Positions 40,202 to 42,786 of a stretch of 64,000 bases of DNA are shown here, one piece after another (within the stretch, counting starts at the first letter, position 1; every line of letters starts with the position of its first letter). Source of the DNA: Geosiphon pyriformis uo1 (taxonomy: Eukaryota; Fungi; Glomeromycota); the NCBI GenBank assembly GCA_016748015.1, contig JAAOMT010000003.1:1306373-1370372 (forward strand). Direction: 5' to 3'. Both the position numbers and the translations under genes were made by a program. The notes below the pieces were generated by a model that was not told the origin of the DNA, searched no databases, and was given only the letters and a program-made list of their open reading frames with translations.

Positions 40202-42786
40202 CACCCTATGAATATGTTATGAGTTGGAACAGGATTTGAGTTGATTCGGAATCAACTTAAATTGATTTGGGATTCTAATTTAACTTGAGTTAATTCGGAA
40301 TCCTTAATTCAACGCTATGTTGATTCCGAATCAACTCAACCAATTACATTATTTGGTTAATTGGCCAGTAAAAAGTTTCCCTTTCATTAGCCAATCAAAA
40401 AAATCAAAGTTTTGATATTTGACGCGTTTTTTTATTATTATTTCTATAATTCTAATTATTCATTTCGATTCTTACAAGCATTATTACTGCTATTATGATA
40501 TCATACATTATATAAAATCTCAGCTTTTCTGTAATTATAATGATTAGTTTTATAGCTTTTTTTACAATTGCATTAATAATCTGTCATTTCTCCTTAACTT
40601 TGGCATAAGGCTGCTTTATGTAAAAAAATAAAAATGTTTGGTATTTCTTGTAATTCTGAAAAATCAGTAGTTTTAGTAAGCATTAATTCTGTTGTATGAT
40701 AAAAATTTTTTATTATTTCTAACTTGTATCCCAGTTTATATAATTTTTTATTAACAGTTCTAATTACTTTGCAGATAAAAAACTTTTTATTAGTACTTAA
40801 ATAATCAATCTTTGAAATCCCAATTCACATAAAATCTTCAATTTTATAAAATATTTTCTACTTTGTATTTTTATGGAGCATTTTTACACAGTATTACTTT
40901 GGTATTATTAACATATTGGTCACAAGCAATTTAACATATTTTATAATAATTAGTAAGTAAATTAGTAATATTATGTAGCATATTGTTTTAATTATTATTA
41001 TTCTATTAAAAAATATAAAATTATACAAAATAATATTAAAAAATACAAATAATAAAAAATCTTATTTTATTTCTTGAAATTATAATAAAAAAAACATAAG
41101 AATTATTAAAATAAGTATTAATATTTTTGAAAAGATTGCTTGGTTTTTTTACTTGTGACTTGATTTTTCTTGATTTTTTTTCAATATTATTTACTATATT
41201 ATATTATTGCTGCTGGTTTAATGGTTGTTATTACTGCTTTCAATTATTTTGTTGTAATTATTGAATATTTTGCTATATATTATCTTGTTGTTGCTATTAA
41301 TTATCTTGTTATTTATTATCTTATTACTAATTATTTTGCTGTTATTGCTGGTTATTTTGTTGTTACAATTTGTTTTGCTATTGATTACTATTACTTTTAA
41401 TTTTTTGTTGGATTGGCTTTTTATTAGTTGGTTTTATATTTAAATTATTAAGAAAATTTTTTTTTATGTAATTAATTATTTAAAAAAAGACTTGAAAAAA
41501 AAATAATTTGTATAAAATTTTCTTCTAAACATTATTTAATAAGATAAAAAACCAGTAATTACAAAGATTTATATATTTATTGTATTTAAATATAAAAATA
41601 AATTAGTTATTGTTTAAATAATTTAACCAATATAAAAATAATGTTTTTTATATATTATCTAATATAAACTATATAATCAATTTTTAATTTTTTTATTTTC
41701 TATTTATTTTGAAAGTTTTTGTTGAAGTATATTATTTGCTTTTTTAATTAATTTTTGAAATTAAGAATATTTTGGATATCTATTTATAATATAAATAATT
41801 GGTCATATTTTTATTAATTTTTTGATTATATTAACTGTAAACTTTTTTTATTATTGGTTTAAAAAATAGTTGAAAATTTGAATGCAGTAAAAAATTGAAA
41901 AAAAACTTGCTATTTTTTTTGTTTCTTTAGAAAAAAGAACTATAGTTTAAAAAAATTTTGAACATAATAAATATATTTGTAAGAATTATTTGATTGATTA
42001 TATATATTAACCAAGTCTACTTATAAACAATACATAAAACTTTTTGCTAAAATTGAATTTGCAGCTATTAGTTAAGCTCAAAATTATTATATAATGCATC
42101 TAGCATAGCAAAAACAAAGCTATTTTATTAAATTCTTAAGTACTTAAGCATGTTTATTTTTAATATATAAATAAAAAATTATTAGTATCTATTTATATAA
42201 AAAATTAAATTAATATTATATATTATATTATAAGTTTTGCTTATTTTTTTATGTTCTATTTCTAAATAAAATTCATATAGTTTTTTATATAATTTTTTTT
42301 TAAACAAATTGGTTTTTTTGTTTTTTTAAAATAAAATATATTTTGTTTTTTAACTTGTGTAATATAAAAAGTAGTACATATTTAATAATTCAATTTAAAA
42401 TTAAAGTTTTTTTTTCAGAAGTATTTTTTAATATCTTAATATATTAATTTAAGTATTTTTAAGAAAGCAAAGTTTTAACTTGTTTTTTTTTATAAATAGC
42501 TTTTAAAAAGATTAAAAAATGTTTTTTAAGTAAGTTATTCATAATTTATCAATAATAAATAGTGTTAAAAAGTCATAAAAAAATGTGTCAAATATTAAAA
42601 CTTTGATTTCTTTAATTGGCCAATAAAAAAAAACTTTTTACTGGTTAATTAATCAAATAATGTAATTAGTTGAGTTAATTTAGAATCAACATAATATTGA
42701 ATTAATAATTTCAAATTAACTTAAATTAAATTAAAATTCTATATCAACTTAAATTTTGTTTTAACTTATAATAAATACAAAGAGTA
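40202..42786 (-). mobile_element. ~2.6-kb DNA transposon relic with ~210-230-bp terminal inverted repeats (left ~40202-40432, right ~42577-42786)
   Basis: The right end is the reverse complement of the left end with many transitions. An internal minus-strand relic (~40455-40850) reads IGISKID..ICKVI..LYKLG..AAL.QS..CNCKKSYKTNHYNYRKAE..YHN...CKN, resembling the Cys-rich C-terminus of KRBA2/SCAND3-like (Ginger2-type) integrases. Confidence 0.75.

Follow-up and report, generated by a model that had tools for sequence, protein, structure and literature searches.

Introduction

In basidiomycetes the mutation of repeats is biased towards TpCpG or CpG, and, as the unmethylated terminal inverted repeats (TIRs) of plant DNA transposons and CpG islands show (Spm with TnpA, MuDR, VANC), protein-bound terminal sequences can resist methylation. 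The basidiomycete bias has a counterpart in the transposon relics of Geosiphon pyriformis described here, where CpG, above all TpCpG, is the most mutated context, although three quarters of the changes in Geosiphon are non-CpG. Unlike that of the unmethylated plant TIRs, the protection of TIRs in Geosiphon is seen through the mutation record, varies with the flank and outlasts the death of the transposase.

The RIP of Neurospora crassa (RID, DIM-2) resembles the Geosiphon process in its products, namely C:G to T:A changes only, on both strands and in repeats only, AT-rich relics and dead open reading frames. It differs in that Geosiphon, a host outside Dikarya, shows no CpA preference, has CpG as the hottest context and favours a 5' pyrimidine, while one of two linked arms is spared and the dose follows the locus, not homology. 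Closest in favoured mechanism is the mutagenesis of Zymoseptoria tritici, where Dim2 increases mitotic C>T changes tenfold and which is likewise linked to methylation domains, with more than 95% C>T and transposons as its target; there, however, more than 98% of the changes fall at CpA and CpG is spared, whereas Geosiphon is hit in every context and most strongly at CpG (PMC8016269).

Outside Dikarya a RIP-like signature has also been claimed for Zoophthora radicans, from dinucleotide indices (PMC11105155), whereas direction, context and position are derived here from aligned copies and outgroups. Badet and Croll (2025) reported RIP-like signatures in ascomycetes only (PMC12543289), and Geosiphon was not found in the accessible part of their supplements. 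No RIP was found in Gigaspora or in Mucoromycotina, and CpG methylation and sRNA have been described on transposons of AMF (10.1101/2021.03.30.436303), which hold DNMT1, DNMT2, DNMT5, DIM-2 and RID, with 32–50% 5mC in R. irregularis (PMC8298701). Our search of the literature on RIP or C-to-T changes with Geosiphon, Ambispora or Archaeosporales, the 2021 genome paper lying outside its coverage, found no report. The transposon analysed here provides an internally controlled measurement in a glomeromycete, the affiliation suspected in the first-pass annotation, its two ends being equal in age, sequence and copy number and differing 16-fold in dose according to their neighbour, and it bears on how all-context methylation may become a mutational genome defence in fungi without a known sexual cycle.

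Results

The element and its surroundings

The longest inverted repeat in the window (the whole stretch of 64,000 nucleotides analysed) belongs to a degenerate transposon, which the first-pass annotation had taken to span 40202–42786; its true ends, fixed by TGT...ACA and the target-site duplication (TSD) AATA, are 40215–42773. The features of the locus are the following.

39157..40101, minus strand: gene for the riboflavin kinase FMN1, seemingly intact in its four exons; 113 bp lie between its ATG (40101) and the spared TIR
40211..40214, plus strand: left TSD, AATA
40215..42773, minus strand: dead copy of a Ginger2/TDD-type DNA transposon, with T/A now in place of 51% of the ancestral C/G; rve match
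40215..40436, plus strand: spared TIR, the element's 3' TIR; 2 C>T/G>A per 69 sites, CpG all retained; change point about 224 bp inward of the terminus
40236..40337, unstranded: internal palindrome, 100 bp, of 21-bp sub-repeats (z −6.4)
40391..40436, unstranded: TIR inner edge, with CCAAT (40391–95), ACGCGT (40422–27), poly-T and AATAAA (40431–36, minus strand); protection stops here
40456..42576, minus strand: eroded transposase gene with H2C2 zinc finger, DDE core, Gln-rich repeat, Cys-rich C-terminus and introns; 14 stops in the DDE exon
42574..42773, minus strand: 5' TIR of the element, eroded and running up to the transposase ATG; 36 C>T/G>A per 65 sites, one 21-bp unit deleted
42774..42777, plus strand: right TSD, AATA
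42778..43600, unstranded: AT desert, 13% GC, no CpG, separating the eroded TIR from the DHX37 3' region

The element begins with TGT at 40215 and ends with ACA, eroded, at 42771–73. Judged by its TGTNR termini, its 4-bp TSD (perfect in 7 of the 10 copies that have both ends and with a single mismatch in 3), its AT-rich target and a predicted transposase that joins an H2C2 zinc finger to an integrase-like DDE core without RT or RNase H, the element is assigned to the Ginger2/TDD-type DNA transposons. It shares all of these with the described Ginger2/TDD elements, together with introns and a length of 2.7 kb, and differs from them in its 220-bp TIR with an internal palindrome, its Gln-rich repeat and its Cys-rich C-terminus (PMC2836005). 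The 21-bp sub-repeat palindrome is likely a transposase-binding site, and the CCAAT, ACGCGT, poly-T and AATAAA at the TIR inner edge are candidate functional motifs. One 21-bp palindrome unit (TIR positions 25–45) has been lost recurrently, and by its appearance independently, in about half of the copies.

FMN1 is transcribed away from the element, at whose right end about 820 bp of 13% GC DNA precede the DHX37 3' region. On the 3' side of FMN1, erosion begins about 150 bp beyond the stop, so gene 3' ends are no wide shield in themselves. CpG observed/expected (o/e) is 0.93 in the host gene block at 6.5–25 kb and 0.92 in AT-richer host intergenic bins, against 0.14 in the transposon block; erosion is thus confined to transposon DNA, as had been proposed, with no equal AT bias in host intergenic DNA.

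Erosion of one TIR and not of the other

Against a family ancestor in which C/G was restored wherever two copies retain it, C>T or G>A changes occupy 36 of the 65 C/G sites of the right TIR and 2 of 69 in the left (Fisher p = 2.4e-12). Most of the hand counts of the first-pass annotation were recovered: for its approximately 35 such changes in the right TIR a transition-tolerant pairwise alignment gives 33 from left to right, for its single 21-bp indel a 21-bp gap, and for its roughly 7 changes at CpG 7 of 10 CpG cytosines, next to 26 of 55 non-CpG ones (5 at CpG against the ancestor). Its approximately 2 opposite changes and 5 transversions rise to 5 and 9 pairwise, several of the latter in non-TIR flanks; against the ancestor the right TIR has 2 A>G and a single transversion, T>A. 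The left TIR, said to keep its CpG about 100 bp upstream of the FMN1 start, has all five CpG, with 2 G>A and 1 A>G per 69 sites against the ancestor, and the distance measures 113 bp. The arms had been presumed (near-)identical at insertion, yet 5 ancestral differences separate them. "Mostly non-CpG" is right as a count and misleading per site, CpG being the most mutated context.

Direction and dose across the family

A search of the genome with the TIR returned 54 matches, and 22 segments, 13 of them near full length, were aligned as one family at about 20 loci, some of them related by duplication. The reconstructed ancestor has open transposase exons, in contrast to the majority sequence with its many stops. 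Three unrelated sequencing studies, including a Mikania rhizosphere metagenome, supplied outgroup contigs (L051, SRR8936442; L054, ERR14334701; L056, SRR17041471). They are 97–98% identical to the reconstruction, with a CpG o/e near 1 and symmetric differences among themselves; as possible collapsed consensus sequences, they polarise the direction of change and do not show their hosts to be free of erosion. C/G stands in the outgroups at 271 of the 290 sites changed in the window copy, which against the outgroup consensus shows C>T at 209 of 343 sites and T>C at 5 of 714. Pooling the nine heavy copies gives C>T 58%, T>C 0.42% and each transversion 0.2–0.8%, a directional, transition-only spectrum, as had been claimed, with no sign of symmetry.

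The weak sharing of changes between copies (odds ratio 1–4) indicates that most of them postdate insertion. The dose is equal in eight unlinked heavy copies (58–64%, chi-square p = 0.81) and strand coordination is inconsistent (z −0.8 to 3.0, below 2 in 11 of 13 copies, a signal that many rounds would erase), which together point to a clock-like process.

In DNA the outgroup contigs are about 99% identical to each other. Such intact relatives suggest that this Ginger2 has recently moved horizontally between soil fungi, or else point to close relatives so far unsampled. A diverged subfamily (L040:2263–4874) carries about 6% transversions, about 6% T>C and a modest C>T excess only.

Sequence context

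Family-wide, the changed fraction by 3' context is 0.56 at CpG, 0.42 at CpC, 0.38 at CpA and 0.33 at CpT, and by 5' context 0.48 at TpC, 0.43 at CpC, 0.36 at GpC and 0.32 at ApC. Heavy bodies keep only 4 of 408 CpG (99% lost; a dose of 2.3 or more per C) and have lost 55% of their non-CpG cytosines (dose 0.79), from 1.54 at TpCpA, the hottest non-CpG triplet, to 0.46 at ApCpT; CpG decay alone is therefore insufficient, as stated earlier. A pyrimidine at −1 and +2 increases the rate (5' base T 0.68 and C 0.60 vs. G 0.44 and A 0.42). Light copies have lost 29% at CpG against 7–12% in other contexts, so that CpG is about three times hotter than non-CpG in heavy and light copies alike. No excess of CC>TT was found (0 of 162 CC sites in light copies).

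Spared ends and their flanks

The one-sided asymmetry of the window copy is repeated in 6 further full copies. The 3' TIR is spared in five copies (the window copy, L035, L036, L037 and L046), the 5' TIR in five others (L038, L039, L041, L042 and L043) and both in L031 and L034. A fixed rule sparing the 5' or the 3' TIR is excluded by this even split. Twelve spared TIRs have 27 of 637 non-CpG and 6 of 106 CpG sites changed, against 299 of 605 and 54 of 104 in eleven eroded ones, and CpG dinucleotides are intact at 48 of 54 vs. 6 of 53 positions. CpG and non-CpG losses thus vanish together at spared TIRs, indicating a single cause.

Background changes at A/T sites amount to 0.8% in spared TIRs, 1.3% in eroded TIRs and 1.0% in bodies, and spared TIRs retain side-specific alleles, private substitutions and deletions. 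Spared TIRs are therefore as old as eroded ones and unconverted. Three candidate explanations can be set aside: spared TIRs or light copies being younger (background change is equal), conversion from the partner TIR (side-specific alleles are retained) and intrinsic resistance of the TIR sequence, which carries a 42–61% load where unprotected.

Beside spared ends lie, among others, the starts of genes that point away from the element (FMN1, LSO2/CCDC124, RPN2, one for a CUE protein and one for a Sel1 protein) and the 3' end of a kinase gene, and eroded ends adjoin CpG-free DNA. The denser CpG is in the kilobase outside a TIR, the lower the load of that TIR (rho −0.78; −0.69 for heavy copies alone), a correlation whose significance is overstated because some loci are related. 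One copy (L032:3702–6259) is an exception to this flank rule, as it has AT deserts on both sides yet a load of only 15%, with ordinary background divergence. The best reading of these data is that damage tracks local chromatin and not mere repetition.

The boundary of protection

At nine spared ends the change points lie 210, 210, 224, 224, 224, 269, 284, 294 and 296 bp from the terminus, the TIR inner edge being at about 220 bp and host starts about 60 to more than 600 bp away; at L035 the TIR is spared behind 470 bp of 14% GC DNA. Beyond the boundary the load leaps to 20–45% and reaches 55–60% within several hundred bases of body. The same boundary corresponds to the transposase ATG at the 5' TIR and to its stop and AATAAA at the 3' TIR.

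What is new here is that protection ends 210–296 bp from the terminus, at the TIR inner edge, however far away the gene lies, which indicates that the element defines the spared unit and the flank allows it to be spared. The first-pass view that genic or promoter chromatin blocks erosion is thus retained in tying protection to adjacent host DNA and revised in its unit, which is the TIR itself with an edge fixed in element coordinates, spared also at a gene 3' end (L041) or behind the AT-rich DNA of L035. The boundary is mapped within tens of bases, and together with the 16-fold contrast between the two ends it separates chromatin-directed from pairing-directed mutagenesis.

At L036 the two TSDs (6295–6298 vs. 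3550–3553) differ in that the one on the eroded side has a G>A, a hint that erosion may also reach the first host-derived bases outside the element.

Discussion

Proposed methylation and deamination in silent chromatin

We lean, on balance, towards heterochromatic all-context methylation followed by deamination, with the TIR as an unmethylated island, and not towards pairing-driven RIP. About 20 Ginger2 copies would have inserted at nearly the same time, and those joining a silent, transposon-rich domain would have had their cytosines methylated in every context, CpG possibly by a DNMT1/DNMT5-type enzyme and non-CpG by a DIM-2-type one. Methylated cytosines would then steadily turn into T through deamination, either spontaneous or assisted by the methyltransferase. 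The TIR, as promoter-like DNA, would form an unmethylated island edged by its inner boundary where host DNA that retains its CpG is no more than about 0.5 kb away, and would erode like the body where silent DNA lies on both sides. The contrast between spared and eroded DNA, about 18-fold at non-CpG and 40-fold at CpG, is of a size for which dense all-context methylation and deamination could suffice without a dedicated mutator; of the "active or methylation-driven" system suggested at first, the active half is hence not required. Two observations sit poorly with methylation and deamination, namely the light load of L032 inside AT deserts and the restriction of known Dim2 mutagenesis to CpA (>98%), unlike the Geosiphon spectrum. 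From one-sided erosion, sharp predictions for the methylome follow.

The proposed search for methyltransferases and deaminases was productive for the former. A family search of the genome with PF00145 identified seven loci, above a minimal set, on C371, C702, C657 (two), C666, C646 and C692, of which C371 (RFD-BAH-BAH-MTase) and C702 (BAH-MTase) encode enzymes that appear DNMT1/DIM-2-like by architecture, the other five being known by their PF00145 match only. MT-A70 occurs at three loci. The same kind of search returned no APOBEC_N match, a weak negative, and five ordinary CDA-fold loci only. TDG/MUG and UNG were both found; there is thus no evident repair defect, and loss of either as the cause is discarded.

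A dedicated, enzyme-driven cytosine mutator is a lesser possibility that deserves consideration. Independent of pairing, it would be guided by small RNA or chromatin to the transcription units of silenced transposons, would hit every context with a preference for pyrimidine-flanked cytosines, and would halt at promoter-like terminal repeats, constituting a RIP-parallel defence outside Dikarya.

Alternative explanations

The chemistry could be the same and the cause of the boundary different. sRNAs from the transposase unit might direct methylation or mutation to the body, TIRs being spared by default and eroded only if flank heterochromatin closes over them. The ATG and the stop with AATAAA at the TIR inner edges make the unit between change points the transcribed unit, the TIRs of L035, L031, L034 and L041 are spared despite AT-rich flanks, and AGO-loaded sRNA from young TEs is documented in R. 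irregularis (10.1101/2021.03.30.436303). The load, however, climbs gradually over several hundred bp into the body from a spared end, and where host DNA adjoins both ends the body is light (L031, L034), which extends the control by the flank to the body. We consider transcript guidance unlikely, if worth keeping in view.

RIP proper, that is, premeiotic, pairing-triggered and RID-dependent, would need a new sequence preference and a local block by open chromatin. It would account for transitions only, on both strands and in repeats only, and for the hot TpCpA (dose 1.54); RID homologues are reported in AMF (PMC8298701), heterochromatic RIP in Neurospora also requires DIM-2 (PMC11969663), and many weak rounds would likewise yield uniform doses and erase strand runs. 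Against it, the arms of a 220-bp inverted repeat only 2.1 kb apart differ 16-fold, copies of equal homology span a 6-fold dose range, CpG is hottest and CpA not preferred, and 216-bp host tandem repeats retain CpG and differ symmetrically. RIP in the strict sense, to which the TIRs had first been likened, thus finds neither a CpA nor a TpCpG preference, nor consistent strand-coordinated runs, and with linked arms so unequal we judge it improbable. The Geosiphon process works like Dim2- or heterochromatin-linked RIP and lacks two features that define RIP, CpA preference and paired mutation.

The TIR might instead have been kept or restored, by selection on a co-opted FMN1 promoter, TIR gene conversion or read collapse in a short-read assembly. 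The boundary does coincide with the end of TIR homology, and FMN1, RPN2 and LSO2/CCDC124 are housekeeping genes. The side-specific alleles, private substitutions and deletions of spared TIRs, their A/T background (0.8% vs. 1.3% and 1.0%) and the TSDs matching across both ends oppose restoration, and selection would need to act on nearly all 69 C/G sites, while TIRs far from promoters are also spared, which makes preservation of this kind very improbable. A single-strand deaminase (APOBEC/AID-like) or UV photoproducts, both favouring TpC/CpC, would fit the rate increase after a 5' pyrimidine and are most improbable, given the heavy hits at purine-flanked C and the lack of a CC>TT excess, of consistent strand-coordinated clusters and of an APOBEC_N match in the family search. 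Passive 5mCpG decay by itself, or an AT bias across the whole genome, matches CpG being hottest and 99% lost in heavy bodies and can practically be dismissed, as 55% of non-CpG cytosines are lost vs. 0.4% T>C and AT-richer host bins keep a CpG o/e of 0.92.

Other repeats in the window

The host tandem units of 216 bp lie in an open frame of 433 aa (19735–20620, minus strand), are 71–84% alike and retain CpG, with the two transition directions symmetric at 39:39. A GC-richer stretch (43678–43892) lies at the border of desert and gene; Rfam over 42800–44100, which includes it, gave no match at E 0.1. A 1.45-kb duplication, 100% identical (60958–62428 and 62558–64000), flanks an N gap and is probably a scaffolding artefact. 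An older repeat pair, 6–880 vs. 34655–35529, with 40% vs. 23% GC and 176 vs. 47 directional transitions, is another family with the same erosion.
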